Notes under the pieces: generated by a model | What the model was told of the DNA's origin: nothing | Databases searched by the model: none | The model's input: only the letters and a program-made list of their open reading frames with translations | Program-made: the position numbers and the translations under genes | Source of the DNA: Octopus sinensis | Taxonomy: Eukaryota | Direction: 5' to 3' | Length of the DNA stretch: 33,000 nucleotides | Assembly: GCF_006345805.1 (NCBI RefSeq) | Contig: NW_021833731.1 | Coordinates: 31,001 to 64,000 of the forward strand | Shown: positions 5,209-27,469 of the stretch, piece after piece | Position numbering within the stretch: the stretch's first letter is position 1 | How the letters are laid out: each line of letters begins with the position of its first letter

Positions 5209-6030
5209 CTCAGATATCAAACAAGAATGTAAAAACAGCGTGCTAGTTTGAATATAAAATTTAAGGACACTATAAAAGAAATATTAATAAATCTGATTGT
5301 TTTTTTACAAAAAGGGTGATAATTAGACATTATTTTTGTTAGAAACAATCAAAAAGATATCTAAAATGCTGAAAATTCTAGATTTGTGACGAAAAATTCT
5401 CCAAAGACAGAACCACAATGCAAAAAATTGGATCAGAGCGTCACCCGAAGTTGTCTTCAGATCAAAAAACACATTACAATTACCTTCGAAGAATGAATTA
5501 TCAATTTCTGCCGTGTCTCTTTCTGAAATTGCCAAACTAATATTAATATTGACGTCTCTCCTAAACAATTGGTCTGATAGTGAACTCATTTGAATTGCAT
5601 CCGAATAGCAAAATATAAAATTTATTTGACTTCAAAACATAAATTTAGCCGGTTAATTTCAAAATAAGATTTTATTCATATCTGACGAGGAATTGAAGAA
5701 ATTCATCTGCTCAGATGAATCATGTTTAGAAGCTTATAATAGTCAAGTACGAAGGATTTTTTACCGTGAAAACGTTATTAAAAATCCAATATCGTTTAAA
5801 AAATGCTTTGAAACATAAATTTCTAACAAAAAATTTTTCATACAATCTAAATATAGATTTCAAAAACATCAAGTAATTCACAATATTAAATACTTTAGAA
5901 GAAAAATGTATTATTTACTGATCGTAAGCATCAATAGAAAGATTAATATTTTTCTAAAAGTCGACATATTATTAAATAAAGATTATTTAATATAAAAAAA
6001 TACATTAATAAATAATTTATTTCATTGTGG

Positions 6031-7087
6031 ATGCCACCAAAAGAAGGATTTCTTTGTCCTTCATGTCATAAAAAGTATAATAATGAGAACGAATTAACAT
6101 CACACTTTCTAAACACCCACAATGACCCCATTACCAGTCTATCCCACATTGACTAACCCATAGACTTTGAAGAACAACCCTCCAATCCACAAACAATAAA
6201 ACCCCAAAAAATAGGTCTCCACTAAACCAACCAGAATTATAGGCCTAATGAAGGACGATACTTCTTTACTCAAAAACCTCCGTGAAAAACACGGAAAAAA
6301 CAAAGAAGCCAACGCCAAACTGATTTGGAGACTTTCTCGACTTCTCGCTGGTCTCCGAGAGGCAACGGGGAATCGAGGACTGTCAAAAACCAAGGCTTTG
6401 GAGGTTGAAAAATCCACTGTGCCTTGGATCGATGACAAAATGTCTTCAAATTGTTATTGCTGTAAAAAAACCTACAATTTAATAAACCGACGACACCATT
6501 GCAGAGTTTGTGGCTACATAATCTGTTCGAAATGCTGTTTTTTTATATCCTACGACGACGCAGGCAGATTTGAGAGTTTAATTCCGCAGAATGTTTCACC
6601 ACAGTTTATATGGATTGGCCTGACTGTTCAAAATCTCAAATCCAAGTCGATTTCAACGACAAATATAAAGTCAATTCAATCCGAATTTGTGACATTTGTC
6701 GACAGTTTATCAGCAAACGTGTCAGGACGTTAAACGAGAGCAGTGAAGGGACTGATTTTAAGCGAAAGTACTCGGTAGATGTGAGGGATTGAGGTCACTT
6801 AGTAGAGTCTTATGGAAGCTGTTAAATTTGCGGAGACCGTGGTCGGGCAGTTGGAGGACATGGACAGTTCAGAGGAGGCCTATGAGAGTGTGAAGGACCA
6901 GGCAAGGGTGGCTTGTATTTCTGTGGGGAATTGCAGGTTTTGTTGTATTAAAATGTTTAGTTTGTATTTTTTGGAGATTAATGAGAAATGTAAAGAAGAA
7001 TTCCCACTAAAGTCAAAGATTTGCGTTAATATAAGAAAATTTGCAATTAATGTTGTACAAGACCACATTGGACGTATTTCAAATTGA
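6031..7087 (+). CDS. RBSN: Rabenosyn-5 / Vac1-Pep7 orthologue (C2H2 zinc finger + FYVE), short form of ~306-314 aa
   Basis: Starts MPPKEGFLCPSCH..HFLNTH (C2H2), then KLIWRLSRL, EKSTVPWIDD..C..C..RRHHCRVCG..C..C (FYVE) and IRICDICRQ. The frame is restored by introns 6137-6163 (27 nt), 6215-6242 (28), 6564-6589 (26, GC-AG) and 6775-6805 (31), plus a probable in-frame 6937-6960 (24). Spliced length of 945 nt is a multiple of 3. Confidence 0.9.
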
Positions 7088-7149
7088 ATTAATTTTATTT
7101 ATTGGATTTTATATATTTTTAAATAATTTTTCGTATCGTTATATTAAAA

Positions 7150-7530
7150 TGTCTAAGTATATATTGTGGGTCGGGCTCTAACTGTAATTTTAGAATAATA
7201 TTTGTGCAGAGCTTTAAACTGATAAGACGTGCAAAGGCATTTACATTCACGACATTAAATGAGTTTTCTGGTATTTTCTGTACTGAGTTTCAGATACAGT
7301 AACGGGTATTAGATAAAATGTTGATTACAAATGTTTCAATTTTGTAATGATTAAAAGAACAGAAATAAAAAAGAATGTTTGTAATTTGGAGAATGTTTTT
7401 CCAAAGGGAAATGCAACGTCATGTTAATTAAATTAATTTTGAATGTCTCGCAACATTCTCCAATGAAATCACCGTATCTAAAGCCTTAAGTGATTCTTGA
7501 AACATTTGTGTTAAGTCACAGTCATGTTGG
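7150..7530 (-). pseudogene. Decayed paralogue of the secreted LRR family
   Basis: Shares GACTGTGACTTAACA, GTAATCAACATTTTAT, AAATACCAGAAAACTCATTT and GTGAATGTAAATGCCTTTGCACGTCT with the copies at 7910-8715 and 24318-25118. It has deletions, broken frames and mutated splice sites. Confidence 0.8.
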
Positions 7531-7909
7531 CTCACTTATTTATAGATATTAAGCTTTTCCTGATTGTTATTACTCGTATAATGAAAGTTTAAAAACAAAA
7601 TTAGATGGTAGCCAGGAAAGTAGCTAAGAGAATAGTCGAAAGGCTAATGGTCAAGTCAACGGCAACACTCATCTATCCTCGTGTCCGTACTCTTTTGGCA
7701 GGATACCGGTGCTCGGATGAGTCACAGGTGACCCTTTTCAAAAATGTGTTTAAGCAATACCACTTAAATGAAGTTAATAGCAACTTGCAATCCACGTTGC
7801 AAGTTTGCCTTTAATTCTGACTAGTGCACGTAACAATAAAGAAAAGCGGAAACAAGAAATATCAGAATAAATAATTAGGTTAGTTAATGAATATCGTTAG
7901 AATATTTTT

Positions 7910-8715
7910 TCAGTTACATTCACTTGTGCAGATCATATTATTGGGGATCGGGTGGTCACAGAAGTTACAATCTATTGTGAGTATACAAATACACCAAATG
8001 CTTCTTGCATAGTGAGGGTTATCTTTTGATTTTTATATAATTTTAGTTCCACACTGTTGTCGGCTAACATCATATATGCTTCATCCATCACTTTCGTAAT
8101 TCTTATATGAGAATAACAAAGTATACAGTGTGGGTTGGGACCCGTTTGTGAACATGCACACTTTCTGGTCGTGATACAAACTACACAGTCAGTAATTTAA
8201 AATACTAAAGCGTGGCACGACGACTGATTTTTGGCGACTGAAAGATGGTATTTGACGGCATAAAACTTTAATGTTAGAATAAGATTTGTACAGATGTGAT
8301 AATGCGGCTAGACGTGCAAAACTATTTACATTCACGTAACGAAGGTTATCACAGTAATACAGCATTCTAATAATTCGAAATATTTAAATATACATATAGT
8401 CTAATTTATCCAACCCATCAAATGAGTTGTTTAGTATTTTCTTCAGCGAGTCTCCTTTACACTCACTAATATCAATGAAATATTGATTACAATTGTTTCA
8501 AATTTTTTAGATGGGAGAATATTTCTCCATTAGGAAATGTAACTTTTCTCTTTATGGTAATATCTATCCCATCTCCCGCAGCATTTTCTCCATTGAAAAT
8601 ACAGTTGTATAAATTAAGATATCTTTTAAAATAAGCAATTCTTCAATAACCTTCTTGTCAAATCGCAGTCGTTTTGGATCACTAAATGAATAAAAAATAG
8701 GACAAGTGGAAGCAT
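7910..8715 (-). CDS. Secreted leucine-rich-repeat protein with Cys-rich C-terminus, paralogue 1 (207 aa, 8 exons)
   Basis: ATG at 8715. Seven GT-AG introns (8623-8650, 8466-8490, 8367-8393, 8266-8291, 8181-8205, 8064-8091, 7972-7994; 23-28 nt) give an uninterrupted 624-nt frame: MLPLVLFFIHLVIQNDC...IFSHLKNLKQFECKGDSLKKILNNSFDGLDKLDYIMLYYCDNLRYVNVNSFARLAALSHL...DCNFCDHPIPNNMICTSECN*. It has a hydrophobic N-terminus and about 3 LRRs. Confidence 0.85.
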
Positions 8716-8819
8716 TTTAATTAATGCTGATATTTTATTGTCAATAACTCAGTGGTTAGACATTGAATTGATATATTTATTAAACTGTTTTTTTAATATA
8801 ATATTTAATTTAATTATAA

Positions 8820-11153
8820 ATTAACGTCTTTAGTTACTAATAACTAACTAATCTATATAATTCTCCTCCTTTTTGGACCGTTGCACTGGATCTGCGTATT
8901 CTCCTCTTCTAACACTTCATATGACACATGAGACACATCTTCCGGCAAATCTGATGGATCTGTTGTTTCTCTAGCCAATTTTAGGAGGTGGTTGGTGGCC
9001 CTTGAAACTTGTTCCTCATGTTTTTCAATTTCCACTCCATGTTTATGTTCAACAAGCATGGCCTCCAATGTCTTCTTAATCGTCAGCGATTGTATATACG
9101 ATCTAGTGGAAGCATCCAACTTCAGTCTTTCCATATAAGACTTATAGAATTTAGAAACTATCCCGTCCCATGTGAGGACAATGGGGATTATCGTTCCCTT
9201 CGCACCGTGGATTTGAGATAATTCTCCAGCAAGAAGATCATATTTATGCAGTTTTTCTACTTCCACTTGCTTTAACATGGCGTGGGAAGTAATTCCGACT
9301 TCAATTAGAGTGATTTCGTTTTTCTTTTTATCAAGGACAAAGATATCTGGTATATTGTTTTTTACATGAACATCTGTCTGCAAGGTGATGTCCACTCTTA
9401 TCTCCACTTTATGATTTGAGCTAACTGACTGGACTGTGTGTGACTTTAACCTTTTGGTTTTCCTGATTCCATATTGGCGGCAGAGATGCAAATGGATGCA
9501 TCTTATAACTTCATTATGTCTTCTGGTATAATCACTGTTCAGCATTCTGCTACATCTTGTAGCCATGTGATCAACAGATTTTTTAGCTTGATTACAATGA
9601 TTGCACATTCCTCCGTTATCGTTGAAAAATATATTTCGATCCTGAATAATACAATACATTGCTTCTGATCTCGGACTGTTGTTTCCATTCACTAGCCATT
9701 CCGTAGACATATTGATGTCAACATTCTGATCCTCACAACATTTGAAAAGTACGGAATGCACCATCTTCGATTTAATAATCTTCATTAGACTCTTTTGTTG
9801 ATTCTCCTTGATTATGTTTATATTCAATTCTGAAGGATCTTCAATATTGTATTTGAAAGTAAGAAATCTTGCGATGGTGGCCATATGTGTTTTATTTATT
9901 TTCAGGACCCGCAAGATTCCAGCCTTTCTGAGACACATTGCAGACTTTCTTTCAAGATCAATCAAAAATTGGTATAACATGCATTCACTTTTATGGACAA
10001 TTGAATTAAGTCCTCTTCCAAGGTTATATCTGCTTATATATAATCTTTCCTTATTTGCAGGTTTCAGATGAACATGTAAATTAGATAGAATCCTTCGAAC
10101 TTCGGTATCAATGGCTTGAAACTCGTGTGGCTCAATGTCAATTAGTCCAATATAGTAATTGTAAAGTGATAGAGAATATTCATTAATCGCCTTGAATAGA
10201 TTCACTGCATTTATCTTCGTGCTCACAAAGCTTTCAATTCTCTTCTTTACATTTTCTGCAATTTTTTTCATAACTTCATGCTTCAATACATTGCTTCCTT
10301 TATCCTCCAGGACTCCCAGATATCGATATCCATCATATCCGTCAAAACTTCTAGTTTCTTTAACATAATTCAGATTGGTTGCAGATTTTTCAGAATTCCT
10401 CCTGAGACCAACAACACTGAAGTATTCATCAATACTTTCCATCATCCTCAAGATCGTATTTTCTTTCTCAGCAAGTATTTTCAAATCATCAATAAATAGC
10501 AGATGATTAGTTGAGTATGTTATTTGAGACGGGTCATTATGGTCAATACAGATTTTAGGAAACTTGTGATTTAGTATCCTGCTCAACGGATCCATTACCA
10601 GCGTAAAAAGTTGGGGAGATAGTGAATCTCCTTGAAGAATTCTTCTTTCTAATTTCACTGTTCCAATTCTATTTACATTGAGATTCAGAATCACTTTCCA
10701 TTTACTTATCAAACTTTTAATAAACTTTACAATCCACTCAGGGAGTCCAGAATAATCCAATACCAGCGATAAAAATTCATAGTTAACAGAATCAAATGCT
10801 TTGTTTATATCAATCCATGTCGCAAATAAGTTATTTCCACAGTGATTGTTAATGCACTGGTTTATTAAAGCCTGTTCTTTTGCACCCTGGCAATGTCTTC
10901 TAGCTCCCAGTTTGGTAATCCGAAACAAGACCAAATTTAGTGTTGACACATTTTGTAACAAGTTTGTATAGTATAGGCATGCATGTAATCGGACGCAAGT
11001 CAGTAGGTGATTCACAACAAGCTTTTTTTGGGAGGAGAAATGTAACCCCAGTGTAAAACCACAGACCAGGACAGTAATCTCCATTAATAATCTTCAAAAT
11101 TTCATCACATAAATAATTATGGAGAGATTCAAACTTCTTAATAAAAAGCAGTA
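8820..11153 (-). mobile_element. RLE-type non-LTR retrotransposon (R2/R4/Dong superfamily), 3' part: RT + CCHC + restriction-like endonuclease
   Basis: Motifs include DLRPITCMP, GAKEQALIN, DINKAFDSV, LQGDSLSP, LFIDDLK, YRYLG, CNHC..DHMATRC, RHNE, PDIFVLD, IEVG and KLHKY. There are single-base frameshifts near 11145 and 10910, and a short TTAG/TAA-rich 3' tail at ~8820-8855. Confidence 0.93.
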
Positions 11154-12378
11154 CATAACCTGACGCAAATTTAATTTACCAATAGAATGTGTAAAATCGT
11201 TTTCGAAATCTTGAAAACATAAAAATTCCATTAAGAAAGAGGAATAATAATCTTTAAAAATCTTGATTATTCCCATATCCAAAGGTTGTAAATAGGGCGT
11301 TGTATTTTTCGGCAAAAATAAAAATTCGATGTTCGAACATTCGGCAGTTTTATGGCATCCCGCATTGTCAAGTATTAATAATTTTTTCTGTTGTTTTTGC
11401 AAAACGATTCATTTATAAGTGTAAGCCAACTCATAAAAGTCTTTCCAGTCATCCATGCATTTTGAGAAGATGAATACAATAACCCAAAATCTTGAACATC
11501 AAAATTTTTTAGACACCGAGGTTTTTTATATTTTCCAATAATCAATGGATTAAGTTTTCCCCGATTAAACTGCAGCATAGAAGAACAGTGAGTCTTTCTT
11601 TCCTTGTTTATAACCAAAACACGGTTCGCCTTGTTCAACAAATGATTTTTGAGGAGTTCTTTTTATAAAAAGCGCAGTTTCATCACAATTAAATATATTC
11701 TCAGGTCCATATTTTAATACTTTCTGGTCATATTTTTCAAAATAATTTTTCACCACATATTGACTTGAATTGAAGTTCATGCCGCAATTTAAATCTATCA
11801 AGCCACCCATTGGAAGCTTTAAAAGAAGTAAATCCAATTTTTGAAGCTGTAACTAAGGCAATTTTTTTCAAAATAGGGCCTGAAATCGGAATTTTATCTA
11901 CGCGTAGTCTTTGAAATATTTCAAAGACTTGATCATCAAATTTATCTTTATCGGCTTTAAATGTGTCATATTCCTCAGAAATAGTATTGCCGTGTTGCAA
12001 GAAAGGTACAATATTTCGTTTTATTCTTGATATTGTTCCTTTACTTGTGTTGTACTTTTTCATTAGTTGCCTCTCAGATAAATTTTTCTTCAAAATTTCT
12101 TTAGCAATCTTCAATTTAGTTTCGTAATCCATAACCACAACAATAAAAATATAAATTGAAAATAAAACAAAAAATAATTAATTTATTATAATTTTATTTT
12201 ATTTTTAATTCCTTATAAATGATTTTATGGTGCCCCAAAAATTCCATAATTTTTTATCGATTTTTATTTTTTTTCTGCCAAAATGTACTTTTGGAATAAA
12301 GTGCCCCAAATTGCGGGGGTGCCCCAAAATCCGAGGGTGCCCCACCCCTGGGGTCTGCCCCATTTTGGGGTCGGACTG
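11154..12378 (-). mobile_element. pogo/Tigger DNA transposon, frameshifted and lacking its 3' end, inserted in the retrotransposon
   Basis: The 5' end TA|CAGTCCGACCCC is at 12378, with repeated TTGGGGCAC subterminal motifs. Four overlapping ORFs carry the HTH/CENP-B region (FKASNGWLDRFKLRH), FNCDETALF, NAWMT, LILDNAGCH and LQPLDMGII. No matching TIR is present at 11154. Confidence 0.92.
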
Positions 12379-13583
12379 TATACTCCATTGCATCCAGAAG
12401 TCTTCCAGTTTGGCGCATAGTTAATAATACTTTTGATAAAGTCTGGTTTGATGTCAACTGGGGATTGTTCTATGCCAGTTATACGTTTTCCAACAACATC
12501 AGTAACAATATGATTTTCATCTTTTTTCCATGTCTTTTCCCAAAATGACAAACATTCACCTTCTGGCAACGTATATTTATTATCTTCTCCAGCATTCAGG
12601 TTTCGGGAAAACCTCTTTCTGTTGAGTTCAAAACAAAAATTGTCTCTTCTAAATGATTTTCGTGACTCATAAATCGAAATCCTTTTTTCCATGATTTTTA
12701 TTCTATCTTCAATTAACGTACATATTCTGGTGATTTCTCCCTTTTTCGACTTCTTATATCCAAAGGAGCACATAAAGTCCAGGGCCGTATCCTTTTCACT
12801 TTTGGATTTCAGACTGGAGAAATTAGCAATAAGAGTGAGGTTCTCCTTGCATTTAGTAATTCTCTTCTCAATATTTTCCCTCCAAGAGGTTCTTATTTTA
12901 TTTTTAAGAACCAAATTTTCGTATGCACATTGTCCTGCAAAAATAATATCCGTGATTTCGTTTATATCCTTTGGAGGACAAGTCAATACATAATTTGAAA
13001 TCACTGCATACAAAGCAACCAGAATATCTTTCTTAACCAATTTATATGGAATCTTTTTGGTAGGCTTTCTCGAATCCCTTGATATTGATACAACTCTCTT
13101 AATTTGGAAATTAAATTCTTTTTTACATTTTCCATATAAAAAAATTTCTGTTTTTGACAGTGAATTTCCGTTTTCTGTTACATCCACATCATTTTGAGTA
13201 CCACAAGTCTCATTATGGCGTTTCACTTTCAATAATTTTTTAACATCGGAGATGCTTTTCTGAACAAGAAAACGGGTATTGAAATTATGTACAATGAGGT
13301 TCCATCCACCACGAGGGATTCTTCCAAATCTCCGCTTAGCCGAATCAACAACAGAAGATATCCACTGCAATTTGTCGTTAGAATGTGTTTCAGTTATCAA
13401 TGATTTAAGGGGGAGCAAATGCGTTCGTGAAGGTTCAATATAAGGATCATTGCAAGTTTCAGGCATTCCATGTATCCCTGAAGACACGTTTCCAACTTCT
13501 GATTGATTATTATTATTTGTATTTTGTGTAGGAAGGCCCTCAGGATTTGTTTGCGGACTGGTGAAAACAGACATACACGTCAC
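12379..13583 (-). mobile_element. 5' part of the same RLE non-LTR retrotransposon ORF
   Basis: About 400 codons ending ...YAPNWKTSGCNGVY (cf. APNWKAPGPDGI, just before RT domain 1). The frame resumes at 11153 with CF-IKKFESLHNYLCDEILKIING..WFYTG. Confidence 0.88.
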
Positions 13584-13774
13584 ACTTCAAACTATTTATC
13601 ATTATTATTCGGACAATGATTATTCGGACTATATTACAGTGACTATGCATAATTTGTATCAAACTAGTGAGAGAATACAAAATAGTCAGCCTACACCGTT
13701 TGCTTTTTACTTTCGGCCTGAAGGTAAAATAATCCGAAGGTAAGAAGGTAAAATAAAGATAGGGAAGCCTGGGA

Positions 13775-14330
13775 CTAACTAACACAATCCAAATCATTGA
13801 ATCCATATGGCTTAAACTCCATGGTACCCACATAATCATCAAGCAATGAAATGGCATACTCATTTAATGCTATGAATGAATTCACAGTATTTAAACGAGT
13901 TTTACATAACACTGCTACCCGCACTCCATCTATTTTTTAGTTTCAAAAAGAATGAGCGATTTGGGGCTTTCTATGTACCCGAGGTATATATACCCCTCGT
14001 TATCCTTCAACACTTTCACCAGATTGCCAAAAAATTGCGAATTGGTTTCCAACTTGAAGATATTTAGTTCCAATCCTATTTGCCCCGTGAATTCGCTCAC
14101 GAATTTTCCCGTAGAGTTAATTTGCTTTGAGGACAGAGCAAACAACTTAATTTCGCCGAAAACACAAGGTGGTTCATGTTAAGCACATGTCCCTCTGAGT
14201 TATTGACAGATTTTCGTGTTTTTTATTGAGAAAGCTACTCAATGATTCGAGGCAGAGTACAAAAAGCAGAGGCGACATGTTATCTCCTTGTAGAATCCCC
14301 CTAATTGTTATTCTATTTGAGATGAACACT
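13775..14330 (-). pseudogene. Older RLE-type RT remnant
   Basis: Reads GILQGDNMSPLLFVL, EIKLFA, GYIYLGYIE and YAISLLDDYVG..FNDLD, collinear with the RT of the 8820-11153 element but broken. Confidence 0.8.
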
Positions 14331-17398: not shown

Positions 17399-18720
17399 TC
17401 AACTTGGCACTAAGAGGCATTGTCAAGGTGCAAAGGAGCAAGCACTTATTAACTGTTGTGTGAACAGGTCACATGAGTACAAATTATTTTCTTCATGGGT
17501 AGATGTTAAAAAAGCCTTTGACTCAATCAATCACGAATTCCTTGCAGTGATTCTAAAAACTCCGGGCTTCCTGAATGGATAACAAAATTTATAATGTCAA
17601 TAATTCCAAATTGGAAGGTTTCCCTCAAATTAGGAAAGCAGCATCTGGGAATTGTTAACATAGAACGTGGAATACTCCAAGTAGATTCCCTGTCTCCTCA
17701 GTTGTTTATTTTGACTTTGGATCCGTTGAGCAGATTGTTATCAGCTAAATACCTAAATTTATCAGTAAATACCGATCAAGAAAATTTAGTGTTTTTTTCT
17801 ACAAACCATTTTTTGTTCATTGATGATTTGAAACAGCTCGCCAAAGATGAGATCACACTCGGATGTATGATGGAAGACGTGGATTTATTTTTTAAAGCTT
17901 CGGGTTTGGAAAAAAATTGTGAGAAGTCGGCAACAAATAGCTGTTTATTGAGAAAAGATACCAAACTGCTGGACTGGATAGTTACCGTTATTTGGGTGTA
18001 TTGGAAAACAAGTCTAGTCAGGTTGTTAAAGAAGAAGTTTTGAAAAATTTACGGATTGAGATTCAACAACGTATCGAAAGATTGTCGAAAACGAAACTAA
18101 ATTTGGTGAATTTGTTTAAGACAATTAATGAACATGCTTTATCCTTGTACAATTATTATATCGGCCTTCTGGATTTGAAACCGTCCGCTTTTGATGAAAT
18201 TGACAAATTTGTCAGGAAGCTGTTAATGGATCTAAATATTCATATGAAATATTCAAAAAAAGAACCTAATATGGCTTATTGAAATGGGTGTGACTTCAAT
18301 AGATAACCTAAAGAGTGTGGAAGTAAAAAAATTGCACAAATACGACATTTTAGCTAGTGAATTACAACTGATTCACAAGGCTAGGTGAAGATTGTGCCAA
18401 TTGTTATTACGTGGGATAGAATCGTCTCAACGTTCTACCGCAAGTACATGGAGCTCCTTGGGATTGAAGAAAGTGTTTGTTCCTACATCCAGACTGTAAC
18501 GCTGAAGGCCACTCTGGAGAGCATGTTTGTCGAGTACAAACATGGCTTCACTGAAATCCTGGACTCTGCAAATTCCGTAAATAGGGACTGGCGGAAATAT
18601 AATGAAGATCAGCAAGTCCCTTAAGAGACCCAGAGACTGCAGGAGGAGATTGAGGATAATGGCGAGGACGATCAGAGTGGAGTCATGGGGAACTCGGAAA
18701 ACAAAAATTGGAGAGTAATT
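17399..18720 (+). pseudogene. Internally deleted copy of the RLE non-LTR retrotransposon family
   Basis: Reads LGTKRHCQGAKEQALIN, DVKKAFDSINHEF, LSPQLF and FIDDLK. Near 18255 it jumps directly to LIEMGVTS..KLHKYDILA..IVITWD, so the CCHC and most of the RLE domain are deleted. Confidence 0.88.
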
Positions 18721-18778
18721 ATTAATTAGCTAAATTAGATGAATTAAAAGAGGGAATAAAATAGAGTGTAGTGTGGTG

Positions 18779-21537
18779 ATGGATCTGTCAATGTTGTTGG
18801 AGCAATCAGTGTTGGGAAGTAGAGTGTTGTGTAAAGTTGTAGACCCGTGTGAAGTGAAGAAGTGCCTGGAAGTGCTGGAGGAGGCGTGTGAAAGGAATTT
18901 AGTGGGTGGTGTGAGTAAAGTGTAGACGGAAGTGATGTTGGAGCTGTCGGAAGTAATAAAGGGGGAGAGCAAGGAGGTAGTATGTAGACAGGCGTGCATC
19001 CAATTGAAGAATATAATATTTGGGAGTGTGAACAGTGAGAAGCGTGTGTGGCTGGCGCAACGGTGGAGAGAGCAGGAAGAGTGGGCGCGTGAGAGGATAA
19101 AATGGAATGTGAGGAGTGAGTAATGAGGCAGATTGTGTGTGGACTGGGAAAGGAGAGGTGGAGACCGAGCAGTGTGGCGATGGTGTATTCTGCAGTGGCG
19201 TGTGTGGAGATGGCGTTTGGAGAGTGGGAGGAGGGAGTGGTGTTATTGTGCAACAACGTGATGGAGGGGCGTGTGACGGAGGCCAGTTTGGAGGCTCTGG
19301 GGTTCATAGCGAATGACCTGGTGTGGTGTGTGGTAATAGTGCAGGACTGTTCGTACATGGCCCAACACACGGACTTGTTGGTGAGTGCGATTGTGCGTGG
19401 AATGGAGGCGAGTGTGTGAGTGGTGTTTGTCCTATTTAGTGGATATATCCAATTGGCCGCACTGAGGGCTCTCCACTCGACAGTCCCCCTCCTGCAGGCC
19501 AAGGTCCCCCTCCTCTGGTCTACGATAGAATGAACGGGACGTGATAATGAAGGTGGTCTGCCAGTCGTGCCACTCGTCGGACGTGGACGTGGCCGACATG
19601 TCCCTCAGGTGCCTGGATGTCATGGCCGCACACTTTTACGAGTACTTGGAGGACTACATGGCCGACTTGATCTTCCCGGTAGTGAGGACATGACATGTAC
19701 AGATCACGCTCAATGCCATCCAAAGTGAGTCACACGTCCTCCAGGGAATCGAGTTCTGGTCGAGCATTTGTGAGGTGGAGTTGTCCTCCCCCCACTCGTC
19801 CAAGTTGTACGCACAGGCAGCCATGCCCCACATTATATACCCAATACTCACACACCTCCCCAAACAACACGAGGATGACGACACCGACGGCTGCTGGATC
19901 CCCCCCAAAGCAGCCTCCGTCTGTCTCACACTCCTCAGCGAATGCTGCCACGACCACATCCTCCCCCACGTCCTCCACTTTGCAGAACAGTTCATCGGAC
20001 ATGCCCATTGGAATATGCGGGAGGCCGCCGTGATGGCATTCGGTCGTGTTTGTGTGTCACTCCAGGCTGTGTCGTCCGCCACAACATTGCCCCACACGCC
20101 CTCCGCGTCCTCCCCCTCCTCCTCACACTCGCCACTACCGACCCCAGTGTGGCAGTCCGCGACACAGTCGTCTGGGTACTCGGCCAGTTGTGCGAGCACG
20201 TCCCCCACCTCCCCTTCCACGACATTGCCCACACACTCCGCACGTGTCTCACACACGAACCACGAGTGGCCACCAATGCCTGCTACGTTACCATTCTTAT
20301 TCACTTGTAGGCACTCTCCACTCTTGCTTCCACTGCCCCTCACTCACTCTCCCCACACTTTCACCATCTGTTCGACGCACTCTTTCGCCTCTGCACTACA
20401 CACTACGACTCGGTGTACTACGAGACTCTGATCTGTCTGATCACACACAACATACTCCCCGACATGTCTCCTGTCCTCTCACATTACTTCCCACTCATCG
20501 TCCAATTCCTACAACATACACTCCAATTCGACAATCAATTCCACGTACAGTCACTCCTCTGTGCACTCATCAGAGTACTCCTCCCCATCACCACAGTCCA
20601 TTGTCCTCCTCCTCCCCCTCTCACAACTCACACACGCAGACACTGCCTTCCACATCCTCTCCACCTTCCTCTCCTCCCCCGCCCACCACCATGTCCACGA
20701 GGACGCCCTTTACGCCCTCTCTCCCTTTCTCGACGATACTAACACTCACACCATTCTCCCCCTCTTGCTTAATCTCCTCACACCCCACAACGACCAACAG
20801 GTTCTCCACTCTCCCCATCACAGGTCTTGTTCGCCTGTCTGGCACTCCTCGCCGACATCCACTCCCCTCAACACATCCTTCCCTACGCACACCCCCTCAT
20901 GTCCTCTCTCTGGAATATCCTCCTCGTAACTCTCCTCACTATTCCACAGAGTTCACACACCTCCGACAAACTCAAGGCTGTCATTTTGGCCGGCTTCGGG
21001 GACTTGGCCTTGTCACTTGGCCACCACTTTGCCCCATTCGCCACCCTCGTCCTCGACACACTCCAATCCGCTGCCTCCGCCTCTTTCGACCAAGTCCTCC
21101 CTTCCCTCATTCCAGTCCACACAACAAGGCCTCGCTCTCCTCTCACAGACACACGAAGCATGCATTCAGGCATACACTGGCATTGTCCAGGGACTCGCGG
21201 GTGCCTTGTTCTTTAACCACCAGCTTCACACTCTTCCCTTCTCAATCCACATCTCCCCTTCTTGTTCGACTTTCTCACTTCCGTCGCTGCCAACTCTTCC
21301 ATTTACGACATTTCCACCCTCGAAAATTTGTGCGGACTATTGGGGTGTCCACACCTTCTCACTCCTAGGGACATGTTGGGCATGTTTTCCACACAAACTC
21401 GCTCCCTCTTCGCCCTCGACTCCGTCAACCAACTGTTGACCAACGACCGGCTCACATGCACCCCCAACGGCAAGAAGACTGTCAATTGGGTTAAGAAGCA
21501 GTTAAAAAAGGCAAATAAGGCGTATGACTGTGTATGA
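18779..21537 (+). CDS. KPNB1: Importin subunit beta-1 (karyopherin beta 1), 16 exons, ~801 aa
   Basis: Conserved landmarks: MDLSMLLEQSV, QLKN, QRW, RPSS, EASLEALGFI, LQGIEFWSSICEVE, W.PPKAASVCLTLL, REAAVMAFG, DPSVAVRDT, EPRVATNAC, QSLLCAL, HEDAL, FGDLAL, EACIQAYTGIVQGL. Introns: 18819-18842, 18902-18925, 19109-19131, 19321-19344, 19416-19439, 19504-19528, 19679-19702, 20043-20065, 20287-20310, 20575-20596, 20801-20823, 20926-20949, 21094-21115, 21201-21223, 21345-21368. Spliced length is 2406 nt. Four stopless 24-nt introns are inferred from homology only. Confidence 0.95.
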
Positions 21538-21688
21538 TTGTTCTTTCTTTTGTTTGCTTGTTATTCTGTGGCCACCAACGTAGGGACTATTCGAGTAGGC
21601 ATGTCGGTAGTTTACATTACCCACATTTCTCCTCTCCTTATTCCCTTCGTTGGCCCATCTGTATAGTTGTTAATATAGGTGGTGATGT

Positions 21689-23707: not shown

Positions 23708-23840
23708 TGCGACACCGCTTGCCTAAAATTTTTTCTTATATGCTATCCGTGGATTAGCACTGCTTGGATGGACGTAAATAATACACAATCTCCCTCTGCT
23801 TTAATAAATGTGGCATTCCAGTAAAAATATATGATTTAAA
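23708..23840 (+). repeat. Direct repeat copy A (~130 bp), upstream of LRR paralogue 2
   Basis: TGCGACACC.CTTGCC..AAATT...GCTTGGATGGA...ACACAATCT.CC.CTGCTTTAATAA.TGTGGCATTCC.GTAAAAAT matches 25186-25316. Confidence 0.85.
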
Positions 23841-24317
23841 CGACAATCATGAAAAAAATAGTGTTCTATCTTTTTGTGAATAGGGACGGAGTAGGTTTAA
23901 AAGTATTACAAAGTGTTCTATCTCCTATATCGAAAGATTATTTGTTCAAGGCCCGACGAGAACATACATTCTGGCACTTGTAATGAAAAATAGAAAGCAT
24001 CGTTCTGGAACATAGGAATGGGAATTAATATGCCTAATAAAGAAGTCATCACGGCAGTTGTTTGCAATGACAAACTAATAATGCGAAAACCCCAGATGAA
24101 ACAAATTGACAAATTATAAATGACTCTGAGCATGAAAGTAAATGTGGAAATAATGAGTTATGGAGTCCCCTCAAGATGAGAAAAATTTCCAAAAACTAGG
24201 ATCAATAATTACTTGATTTCTTATTATTTTCGGTTTTGGATTTAGTTAATAAAATTTTTAATTTATTTGTTGTCTAACCAATGAGTTATTCACAATAAAA
24301 TATTAGTTTTAATTAGA

Positions 24318-25118
24318 ATGCTTTCACTTGTCCTAGTTTTGGTTGACTTAGTGGTCCAAAGTGACTGTGACTTAACAAAACGGTTTTTGAAAAATTGCTT
24401 ATTTGAATTAGAGATTTGCAAAACTGTGAATTTAATGGAGCAAATGCTGCAGAACATAACACAATAATTGTAATTTCTAGAAACGTTATATTTCCAAATG
24501 GAGAAATATTCGCGAATTTAACAAACTTGGAGGATTTGTAATCAACATTTTATTAATACTAGTTACTGTAATGGAGACTCGTTAAAGAGAATACTAAACA
24601 ACTCATTTGACGGGTTGATTCACCTACGCTATATGTACATTCAAATATTTTGAATCATTAGATCACTGTATTCCTGTAGTGACCTTCGTTACGTGAACGT
24701 AGATGCCTTTGCACGTCTAGTCGCATTATCAACTCTGTACAAATCTTATTCTAACATTAAAGTTACATGCCATTAAATGCCATTTTCCAGAGGCCAAAAA
24801 TCAGTCGTCCCCTCGGCATGGGGTATTTTAACTTACTGACTTTGTAGTATTATTGACGGCCAGAAAATGTGCATATTCACAAATGGGTCCCAACCCATAA
24901 TGTATACTTATATATTCAAATATAAGGATTACGACAGTGACGAAATATCTAGCTATCGAATTAACTGATAAAAATGTAGAAATGAATCCACGTACAACTC
25001 CAGACGCAACACTAATCACTGAGGAAGCCTATGGTGTGTTATTTTACTCACAATAGATTGCAACCTCTGCCGATATCCCGCATCAAGCAATCTTCTATGC
25101 GGAAGGGATTGTGCTTAA
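24318..25118 (+). CDS. Secreted LRR + Cys-rich protein, paralogue 2 (~200-205 aa, 8 exons)
   Basis: Same exon/intron layout as 7910-8715: MLSLVLVLVDLVVQSDCDLTKR..IFANLTNLEDFYCNGDSLKRILNNSFDGLIHLRYISLYSCSDLRYVNVDAFARLVALSTL...DCNLCRYPASSNLLCGRDCA*. The homologous intron-6 acceptor is AA (24963-24964), but in-frame AGs lie at 24952 and 24979. Confidence 0.75.
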
Positions 25119-25185
25119 TTTAAATATTCAATGTCATTAATTAACTAACCTAATTATTCATTATAATATTTCCTTGTTCCTCTTT

Positions 25186-25316
25186 TGCGACACCACTTGC
25201 CAGAAATTCTTTTTTAGATGCTATTCATGAATTGGCACAGCTTGGATGGATGTGAAATAAAACACAATCTTCCCCTGCTTTAATAAGTGTGGCATTCCTG
25301 TAAAAATGTAATTTAA
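25186..25316 (+). repeat. Direct repeat copy B (~130 bp), downstream of LRR paralogue 2
   Basis: Diverged direct copy of 23708-23840, offset by ~1478 bp. Confidence 0.85.
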
Positions 25317-25675: not shown

Positions 25676-27469
25676 CAGTAGACTATCCATTTAACGAAAA
25701 AAAATTTAACGAAAATATTCATTTTACGAAAGTCAAAATATTTTTTTACGTTTTTCCTTAGATAAATTCAAAAATAAAATTTTTTTTTCTTTGTATTAGT
25801 GAATATTTAAATATATTTAACGAATATTTAAATAACGAAAATTAAAATTTTTGATAAAATTTTAAAATAATTTTTCCTCGCTATTTCTTTGTAGTAAACC
25901 ATGTGTGCAAGGGTGAACAATATGAAGAAAAAAAGAAAAACTTATCAAATTCAACAAAAACTGGAAGTTATTGATTTCAAGAAGAATAATCCTGCTGTTA
26001 CTCAAGAAAAATTGGCTCAGCGGTTTAATATGCCTATTGGAGTGATCAATTCAACGTTGACGAAAATGCAATTGTATGGATCAAGGCGTCACAAACAAAA
26101 AAAGAATATTACATTTAAAAGTTGTACTGATAAGATATATGAACCACTATATGCATGGATTCAGAACAAACGTTTCTGTAATCACACCATAACTAATGAA
26201 ATGGTACGCGAAATGGCACTCAAAATTGCTCAACGATTTTATATTGAAAATTTCAAAGCATCTCATCCATGGATTTCACGCTTTAAGGAAGAGTATAAAA
26301 TAAAAACACTCACGATTTCTGGAGAAGAACAATTAGTTGATCCCGTTTTGCTTATAGATTCATATGAACGCTTTGCAGCCATGTTAAAAAAATATGGATC
26401 GAAAAATTTTTACAACTGCGATGAAACTGCCCTTTTTTTCAAATGTACTCCAAAAAAACATTAGTTCTTGACTCTGAATCAAGGGCTTCAGGAAAATTTT
26501 CTAAAGAACGAATAACACTGTTATTATGCACAAATATGGAAGGAGATAAAGAGCATCCGTTGGTAATCGGAAAATTCAAAAATCCTCATGGTTTTAAAAA
26601 TATTAATATGAATAATCTTGGGATTCAATATGCAAATAGCAATAAATCTTGGATGACCAGTTTAATTTTTAAAAACTGGGTTGAACGGTTAAATTCCAAA
26701 ATGAGTATGGAAAATAGAAAGATTTTACTTCTTTTAGATAATGCGCCAGTTCACTATTTTGATGGCGAATTCAGTAATATCGAATTGTATTTTCTTCCTC
26801 CAAAGACAACATCTAAGATTCAACCAATTGATCAAGGGATTGTGCATTCATTTAAATCGTTGTATAAAAAAGGAATGACTAGAAATTTGAGTATGGGAAC
26901 AAATATAGGAACATTGTCATATACAGATGAACTTACCAAATTCAAATTAGTGAATGCTCTACCTTTAATTATTGAGGCTTGGAACGAAGTCACAGTGGAC
27001 ACTATCAAAAATTGCTTTAACAAGGCATTAAATAATTGGGCGAAGATAGATGAAAAAATACTTGAAGAATCCACTGACGAAAAAGGTATTAAATTTAAAT
27101 CACCTTACAATTAAAGATAATAAAAGTGAAATTATGATTGAGTTTCCTGTCTGTGCACCTGTCGTCTGCGAAGAAAACGCGTATCTTGATACAATACAAT
27201 GTGAGGAAGAAAATGAGCATGAAGAAATAGATAGCACAAATGACAATCCCATTGGTTATGCAGATGCACTTAAATATTTGGAAAATATTGAAAAATATTT
27301 TTTGCAAGAATCTGGTGAACATATTCACCTAATTACAAATTTGAGAAATATATTGGCAAAAATTAAAAAGAAGGAACCTAAAATTACCGATTACATGACA
27401 CATTTTTAATTAAACAATTTTTTTCATTAAATTCTCAATTTTCATTTTCGTTAAATGAATAGTCTACTG
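25676..27469 (+). mobile_element. Full-length pogo/Tigger transposon with TIRs and TA target-site duplication; near-intact transposase (25901-27409)
   Basis: The left end is TA|CAGTAGACTATCCATTTAACGAAAA; the right end is its reverse complement with 1 mismatch in 25 bp, followed by TA. The transposase has HTH, YNCDETALFF, KERITLLLC, SWMTS, LLLDNAPVH and IQPIDQGIV. It has one frameshift in an A7 run (~26452-26458) and a 31-nt GT-AG intron at 27086-27116. Confidence 0.95.

Follow-up and report, generated by a model that had tools for sequence, protein, structure and literature searches.

The window, a 33,000-nucleotide (nt) stretch of AT-rich eukaryotic DNA from the Octopus sinensis assembly (G000:C10202:31001-64000, part of the 67-kb contig C10202), carries two intact eight-exon genes and one degraded copy of a large, unannotated multigene family predicted to encode small secreted leucine-rich repeat (LRR) proteins. 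Between close paralogues, introns differ by ~2%, four-fold degenerate sites by 2–3% and flanks by 1.5–3%, whereas exons differ by 8–10%, and the exon differences are almost all amino-acid changing. The favoured reading, a secreted, diversifying LRR family of a dicyemid-like parasite, receives as a whole a probability of roughly 0.6.

An earlier reading of this DNA, made from its letters (the original prediction), had proposed two eight-exon genes hidden from the open reading frame (ORF) track. Both were reproduced independently by a beam-search exon builder, at exactly the same coordinates. The gene copies and their conserved borders are as follows.

7910–8715, minus strand: LRR gene copy A, A-type subfamily, 208 amino acids (aa), spliced eight-exon model
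24318–25118, plus strand: LRR gene copy B, B-type subfamily, 206 aa, spliced eight-exon model
7139–7536, minus strand: degraded family copy (pseudogene) directly downstream of copy A, from alignment to copies A and B
8716–8775, minus strand: conserved proximal upstream block of copy A (-1 to -60), from the family-wide diversity profile
24258–24317, plus strand: conserved proximal upstream block of copy B (-1 to -60), from A-B homology and family diversity
7842–7909, minus strand: conserved 3' block of copy A (ATTCATTAACTAACCTAATTATT...), from A-B homology and family diversity
25119–25186, plus strand: conserved 3' block of copy B, matching family locus L092

Copy A is assembled from exons at 8715–8651, 8622–8491, 8465–8394, 8366–8292, 8265–8206, 8180–8127, 8101–7995 and 7971–7910, and copy B from exons at 24318–24382, 24412–24537, 24563–24634, 24662–24736, 24763–24822, 24848–24901, 24927–25033 and 25057–25118. 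The seven introns, all GT..AG, measure 28 (A) or 29 (B), 25, 27, 26, 25, 25 and 23 nt, and removal of these 23–29-nt segments leaves both frames open under the standard genetic code, ending in TGA in copy A and TAA in copy B. Neither gene is visible to the ORF track, because no ORF of at least 90 aa overlaps either one.

Alignment of the reverse complement of 7830–8800 with 24230–25200 reveals A-B homology extending from ~47 bp before the ATG to ~68 bp beyond the stop, including the ATTAACTAACCTAATTATT block, in agreement with the ~50 bp of shared upstream sequence and the common 3' motif described originally. Intron 4 is identical at 26/26 positions and intron 5 at 23/25, the same counts as claimed, and the remaining compared introns are identical at 21/25, 23/27, 20/25 and 19/23. 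Exon 4 contains 16 identical codons, one purely synonymous difference and eight non-synonymous differences, again as claimed, and the hypervariable stretch in exon 2 (GDGIDITIKRK versus EHNTIIVISRN) is present. The pseudogene, originally placed at 7150–7530, was recovered as collinear remnants at about 7536–7139: exons 2 and 3, parts of exons 1 and 4, the last portion of exon 6, and introns 2, 4 and 6. It is without the ATG, exon 5, most of exon 6 and exons 7–8, and has internal deletions and one insertion.

The upstream block of copy A holds a CCAAT-like AACCA(A/C)TGAG element and an A/T-rich AATAAAATA element. Family-wide diversity in the proximal upstream block is 0.06–0.18, compared with 0.45–0.6 further out, and a promoter role appears plausible. 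The 3' block of copy A is presumed to comprise the 3' untranslated region and the end-processing region.

The original prediction had proposed that the genomic copies be gathered and their dN/dS (the ratio of non-synonymous to synonymous divergence, omega) computed, and both were carried out. A six-frame search of the assembly (2.72 Gb, 13,516 contigs) with copy B returned at least 230 exon-wise matches. The best 150 of these group into ~70 loci, spread over at least 41 contigs of 20 kb–1 Mb, and none of the 150 strongest lies on contigs C1–C30. The canonical structure, found in 34 fetched loci corresponding to 26 distinct intact genes, consists of exons of 65, 126/132, 72, 75, 60, 54, about 107 and 62 nt, separated in all 26 genes by introns of nearly invariant length (28–30, 25, 27, 26, 25, 25 and 23 nt). 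Eight open exons and 14 splice dinucleotides are preserved throughout. The eight-exon structure is beyond chance, since it is kept open in 26 distinct genes with near-invariant introns.

A further ~13 full-length loci are disrupted and ~20 are fragments, and contig C9004 alone holds at least 14 loci, including six distinct intact genes. These tandem or clustered loci, among which degraded copies are at least as numerous as intact genes, bear out the birth-and-death turnover suggested originally, and copies A and B are probably functional members of a clustered multigene family. An identical copy A protein is encoded on C10089 (L031) and a one-residue variant on C12459 (L050). The closest relatives of copy B (L052, L032, L051, L053 and L040) are 94–95% identical over 1.9–2.4 kb including flanks. 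Copies that are identical or 98–99.8% identical occur on different contigs and reflect assembly redundancy, haplotigs or several parasite lineages.

The copy-A region (6820–9715) is 99.76% identical to the L031 locus (C10089:51131-54030), 98.1% identical to one place on C12459 (L050) and 94.8% identical to another (L049). C12459 contains the complete LRR-importin-LRR arrangement twice, ~84 kb apart; the doubling could represent haplotigs, false duplication, segmental duplication or several parasite lineages. In five members (L034, L058, L063, L072 and L082, on C10228, C12598, C2705, C8638 and C9004) the usual stop is gone, and the reading frame continues for another 10 codons (…KNILTVFIN or SKIRISVIN) within the conserved 3' block; in three of the five, two C-terminal cysteines are also replaced.

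All members begin with a hydrophobic 16-residue leader, with a mean Kyte-Doolittle hydropathy of 2.9 over residues 2–13, and show no second transmembrane-like segment (no later 19-aa window exceeds 1.4 on the same scale). N-glycosylation sequons are kept at N78 in 20/26 genes and at N147 in 25/26. Seven cysteines are invariant (17, 29, 68, 95, 143, 190 and 203), two more are nearly so, and residues ~38–139 form five xxLxLxx strands. The mature protein of ~190 aa is predicted to comprise a two-cysteine N-terminal cap, about five LRRs and a family-specific C-terminal module composed of a QKMCIFTNGSQP motif, a variable linker and a CxxC...C...C knot. Residues 140–208, which include C143, C190, C193, C203 and C207, have no Pfam or PDB match.

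Pfam LRR_8 matches all 22 aligned members (best E 1.2e-8), with the window copies at 26.8 and 23.5 bits, just below the 27-bit cut-off. The family profile aligns with PDB chains of LRRTM (7e-16) and of LGR4/5, LRRC15, LRRC4 and the variable lymphocyte receptor (VLR; 1e-12 to 1e-9). No Pfam LRRNT domain is found at E<=10 or E<=1, yet the invariant C17 and C29 precede the first strand and the VLR chain aligns from residue 16. Pfam LRRCT has no match in the window copies or the 22 aligned members. LRR_5 gives weak matches in 20/22 members (best 6.6e-7), with LRR_8 better in all members and the window copies at 19.7 and 23.3 bits, under the 27.7-bit Pfam cut-off. These profile comparisons place the predicted proteins in the LRR superfamily, within its typical, extracellular class. 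The leader, the lack of another transmembrane-like segment, the sequons, the invariant cysteines and repeats homologous to animal extracellular ectodomains all point to secretion and agree with the secreted, ligand-binding design suggested originally.

Exons 2–6 are all multiples of 3 nt and share the same phase in the 26 genes, and a single repeat is encoded by each of exons 3 and 4. Introns 2–4 interrupt the codon for the first hydrophobic residue in successive LxL strands (F66, I90 and L115), and the unit of the gene is therefore one repeat per exon.

Neither a single protein nor the 22-sequence alignment found homologues among 5.8 billion clusters, and none of 10 spliced proteins had an identical entry among 15 billion. 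This absence is weak evidence, because such collections probably hold few intron-rich eukaryotic models. Ordinary gene callers are probably blind to the family, since no exon exceeds 44 codons.

Exon divergence exceeds intron divergence throughout the close comparisons, as originally proposed. Across 12 edge-disjoint gene pairs, exons diverge by 0.099 and introns by 0.045, with 0.028 in the proximal 60 nt upstream and ~3.5% in the first 160 nt downstream. Compared with its five closest relatives, copy B differs by 1.7% in introns and 9.4% in exons, and by 1.5% over 890 nt of upstream flank and 3% over 475 nt of downstream flank; against L052, the differences are 2/180 in introns and 53/620 in exons. 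Four-fold sites, counted in codons with unchanged first and second positions, match introns in the B clade (0.023 versus 0.021; ranges 0.023–0.034 versus 0.021–0.024). The corresponding values are 0.058 versus 0.041 over the 12 pairs (p=0.08) and 0.204 versus 0.148 in deep A-versus-B comparisons. Replacement divergence in the B clade is 0.114, which is 3.4- to 4.6-fold above introns or four-fold sites.

Because introns, four-fold sites and flanks diverge alike, the contrast between exons and introns is an excess of amino-acid change, and the introns are not unusually conserved. A proposal that introns are 2–3 times more constrained than synonymous sites was withdrawn, as four-fold sites equal introns in close pairs. 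In this AT-rich, fast-evolving family, synonymous divergence (dS) estimated by NG86 is about double that at strict four-fold sites, inflated by two-fold sites and multi-hit codons; dN/dS is therefore understated, and introns falsely look constrained.

Positive selection is concentrated at the predicted binding surface. In pairwise counts over the 12 pairs, the 25 x-positions of the xxLxLxx motifs accumulate 195 non-synonymous and 19 synonymous differences, giving a dN/dS of 3.04 (binomial p=3e-6), compared with 0.62 at the other LRR positions (Fisher p=2.6e-8 for the xxLxLxx positions versus the rest of the LRR region). The ratio is 1.66 in the linker (residues 156–187), 0.41 in the QKMCIFTNGSQP block and 0.31 in the cysteine knot, with a gene-wide value of 1.0. 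Within the B clade, omega exceeds 1 in 28/28 pairs and reaches 1.86 gene-wide (bootstrap 1.30–2.85; NG86, four independent pairs), or 1.9–2.4 by LWL85, YN00 and maximum likelihood. Strong positive selection on the predicted binding surface is the probable cause.

The whole-gene omega of 1.0 and the many degraded copies would also suit a set of decaying, unconstrained duplicates, with an omega near 1 signifying neutrality. Such decay is very improbable given the 26 genes that retain eight open exons and 14 splice dinucleotides, the invariant cysteines and scaffold (omega 0.3–0.6), the significant excess of omega over 1 at xxLxLxx positions and gene-wide in the B clade, and the conservation of the putative promoter and 3' blocks.

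Exchange between paralogues is pervasive. The nearest relative of a gene switches from exon to exon, and the pairwise homoplasy index (PHI) is 0.497 compared with a permuted value of 0.531 +/- 0.007 (p<0.001). In copy B, exon 8 and the next 80 nt differ from L092 at 0/62 and 1/80 positions, while exon 7 differs at 27/107; the same 3' block differs from the otherwise closest relatives at 14/80. The end of copy B, matching L092 rather than its closest relatives, is therefore recombinant. A single local gene-conversion tract, raised in the original prediction as a possible source of intron identity, is not the explanation. Introns as preferred recombination breakpoints are likewise unsupported: once the extra 25 nt is allowed for, site pairs across an intron are no more incompatible than pairs within the same exon.

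The mosaic structure and the PHI signal raise the prospect of concerted evolution, in which introns and flanks are homogenised while diversity selection or balancing selection like that on the major histocompatibility complex (MHC) keeps old exon variants. Flanks as similar as introns, deep A-versus-B introns below four-fold sites, and syntenic copies beside importin-beta on several contigs, which could be alleles, also fit this alternative. It would, however, require implausibly short tracts that homogenise seven 25-nt introns but spare exons of 54–132 nt, and the breakpoint comparison above also counts against it. Four-fold sites within exons are as similar as introns in close pairs; the exons overall are therefore not older, and only replacement sites have diverged. 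We consider concerted evolution unlikely, though it is the strongest of the competing accounts.

MHC class I and II genes resemble the family in that their binding-site exons are more diverged than adjacent introns and copies exchange sequence. In the MHC, however, exons are older than introns and synonymous sites are elevated, whereas four-fold sites equal introns in close pairs of this family; the excess here is therefore recent replacement change. The MHC fold is unrelated.

Under the favoured reading, the family would grow by tandem and segmental duplication, lose members through decay and swap short segments among paralogues. Positive selection would replace solvent-exposed residues of the concave beta-sheet (the xxLxLxx positions) and of the C-terminal linker, while the hydrophobic scaffold, cysteines, splice sites, ~60-bp promoter block and 3' block would be retained. 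Selection of this kind on a retained scaffold would explain why exons diverge 4–5 times faster than introns, four-fold sites and flanks, three classes that share an equally low, near-neutral divergence. The genes would come from an organism whose spliceosomal introns measure ~25 nt, most likely a dicyemid of the host cephalopod kidney, and the variable face would bind a changing partner, most likely molecules of the host renal epithelium or fluid.

Importin-beta genes reveal two organisms in the assembly. Near-identical copies of the importin-beta gene in the window lie on C10089, on C10868 and twice on C12459, and a separate gene on C22 (~24.12 Mb), the host's own, is 36–49% identical with exons >5 kb apart; two sets with two intron regimes therefore indicate two organisms. 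Molluscan haemocyanin genes with seven functional units are located on the chromosome-scale contigs C5 and C28. In the window, the importin-beta and FYVE genes that neighbour the LRR copies likewise have short introns, and non-long terminal repeat (non-LTR) and pogo elements occur. Dicyemids and myxobolid myxozoans are the only animals in which introns shorter than 30 nt have been reported (PMC13644364), and dicyemid introns have a median length of 27 bp (PMC6543705). Dicyema japonicum has been collected from Octopus sinensis (PMC6854800), whose assembly spans 2.72 Gb (PMC12564688).

On this sequence evidence, contig C10202 is of non-host origin and most likely represents dicyemid DNA co-assembled with the octopus host. 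C10089, C10868, C12459, C9004 and about 35 other small contigs seem to be dicyemid-like parasite DNA as well. Inclusion of the contig in the host's public assembly would suit a family belonging to the mollusc itself. We regard this as the least probable alternative, given introns of 23–30 nt in the LRR, importin-beta and FYVE genes, the divergent long-intron importin-beta on C22, and matches found only on small unplaced contigs among the matches listed.

Two further sources were considered. A ciliate origin, suggested by the Paramecium-like 25-nt introns and by the chromidinids of cephalopod kidneys, was rejected on stop-codon usage: ORFs terminate at both TAA and TGA, and neither TAA nor TAG is found in frame. 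A myxozoan origin, despite the sub-30-nt introns of myxobolids, was set aside as the host is a mollusc with seven-unit haemocyanin.

A role at the host-parasite interface would be the leading function of the predicted proteins, and it gains plausibility because the contig itself appears to be parasite DNA. The main rival to this role is recognition of microbes or other non-self by the variable face, as part of the parasite's own secreted pattern-recognition repertoire, like the LRR-only expansions of invertebrates. The nearest sequences are those of animal extracellular LRR receptors, Toll-like receptor and VLR ectodomains among them, and a germline multigene family with omega >1 on its binding face is equally typical of immune receptors; the present evidence does not separate non-self recognition from host binding. 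The proteins, however, have no signalling or anchoring domain, and dicyemid genome papers report strong gene loss without mention of LRR or Toll families (the words 'leucine' and 'LRR' are absent from the text of PMC6736024, PMC6543705 and PMC6854800). We judge non-self recognition unlikely, somewhat more so than concerted evolution.

Several points weigh against the favoured reading. The divergence counts are pairwise and ignore recombination. The xxLxLxx set was chosen after the alignment had been seen, and its defining L positions are of low variability by construction, which favours the contrast with other positions; the gene-wide B-clade result is free of this site-choice problem. The 'concave face' is placed by motif register and hidden Markov model (HMM) alignment to solved LRR proteins. 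Omega in the A clade is about 0.9–1.2. The diversifying selection of the original prediction holds at xxLxLxx positions and across the B clade but not in the pair from which it had been drawn, copies A and B themselves, at 0.58–0.86; the signal comes from closer paralogues and specific sites.

Other points concern the loci and their source. Some apparent pseudogenes or disruptions may be long-read indel errors, and some syntenic 'paralogues' on different contigs, whose flanks are 97–99% identical, could instead be alleles, products of false duplication or orthologues belonging to co-infecting parasite lineages. Secretion is deduced from sequence features, and the dicyemid assignment was reached by exclusion, without comparison to a dicyemid reference sequence.

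The best sequence relatives of residues ~38–128 are animal ectodomains, namely those of LRRTM, LRRC4/NGL, LRRC15, LGR4/5, the glycoprotein-hormone receptors and the Nogo receptor (E 7e-16 to 1e-8). They share with the family ~24-residue LxxLxLxxN/C repeats and an extracellular design, and LGR and FSHR-type genes carry one repeat per exon. Unlike these ectodomains, the family is limited to about five repeats, lacks Pfam LRRNT and LRRCT as well as any transmembrane or other domain, and carries a Cys-rich C-terminal module of its own; it also forms a large, fast-evolving paralogue set rather than conserved single genes.

Lamprey and hagfish VLRs are likewise small Cys-capped LRR proteins with diversity on concave beta-strand residues, and a VLR chain aligns to residues 16 to 117 of the family (2r9u, E 1.7e-9). 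The family resembles them in hypervariability at concave-strand positions (3.04 versus 0.62), as placed by motif and HMM register. VLRs are built by somatic copying of cassettes into an incomplete germline gene, whereas the family comprises 26 complete eight-exon germline genes and has no connecting peptide, LRRCT or stalk.

Plant LRR resistance clusters (Cf, Xa21 and the LRR domains of NLRs) share clustered birth-and-death evolution, paralogue exchange and dN/dS >1 confined to solvent-exposed xxLxLxx residues. The family differs from them in architecture, kingdom and size, consisting of ~200-aa LRR-only proteins that are predicted to be secreted. BspA-like LRR_5 proteins of Trichomonas, Entamoeba and Bacteroidota are also expanded in host-associated organisms, but these are large and usually anchored, and the repeat length and best structural relatives assign the family to the animal 'typical' LRR class instead. 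Diversifying LRR multigene families are already known as a kind; this family itself is new, as is such a family for the phylum.

Dicyemids rank with the simplest animals and have strongly reduced genomes. A positively selected, predicted-secreted LRR family would offer concrete candidate molecules for their attachment to, and tolerance by, particular cephalopod hosts. The seven 25-nt introns serve as neutral rulers interleaved within each gene, outpaced 4–5 times by replacement sites, and parasite genes in a host assembly matter for gene counts, horizontal-transfer claims and repeat analyses. A bolder and rather improbable extension is that the family constitutes a recognition repertoire encoded in the germline of a ~30-cell animal and shuffled combinatorially, a diversity system comparable to the MHC or VLRs. 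With symmetric one-repeat exons set apart by near-identical 25-nt introns, modules of the binding surface could be swapped between paralogues, or between alleles of a clonal population within the host; such a repertoire could mediate host-specific attachment or self/non-self discrimination in the octopus kidney.

Copy B is bracketed by a direct repeat of ~130 nt, probably the footprint of a tandem duplication.

23708–23831, plus strand: upstream partner of the ~130-nt direct repeat flanking copy B, 1478-nt spacing
25186–25310, plus strand: downstream partner, starting at the end of the A-B homology

The remainder of the window contains eukaryotic genes, transposons and repeats. A bacterial reading was rejected: no tRNA or Rfam matches occur in the window, and its ORFs belong to transposons or eukaryotic genes. 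An importin-beta (karyopherin beta-1-like) gene at 18740–21540 on the plus strand is interrupted by many ultra-short introns (e.g., 23 nt at ~19103–19125). Its GC content is 50–56%, compared with ~31% for the contig, and GC skew switches sharply from +0.35 to -0.50 across the gene. A Rabenosyn-like gene at 6016–7084 (plus strand) encodes an N-terminal C2H2 finger (6031–6153) followed by a FYVE finger (Pfam 3.4e-15); short introns break up this gene too, and at its 3' end it comes close to where the LRR pseudogene ends.

A non-LTR retrotransposon occupies 8853–13863 on the minus strand, with a 743-aa ORF that matches RVT_1 (2e-20) and, weakly, a restriction-endonuclease-like domain. Its 3' end lies ~140 nt from the copy A start codon, just upstream of the conserved block. 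Another fragment of reverse transcriptase is located at 17594–18282 (plus strand). About 0.8 kb downstream of copy B, a pogo/Tc5-type DNA transposon at 25901–27409 (plus strand; HTH_Tnp_Tc5 1.7e-12, DDE_1 1e-39) is split across three overlapping ORFs, either frameshifted or interrupted by short introns. A 97-nt tandem repeat (7.2 copies, 95% identity) runs from the first base of the window to position 694 and may extend upstream, and a 120-nt repeat is present in two copies at 1050–1287.

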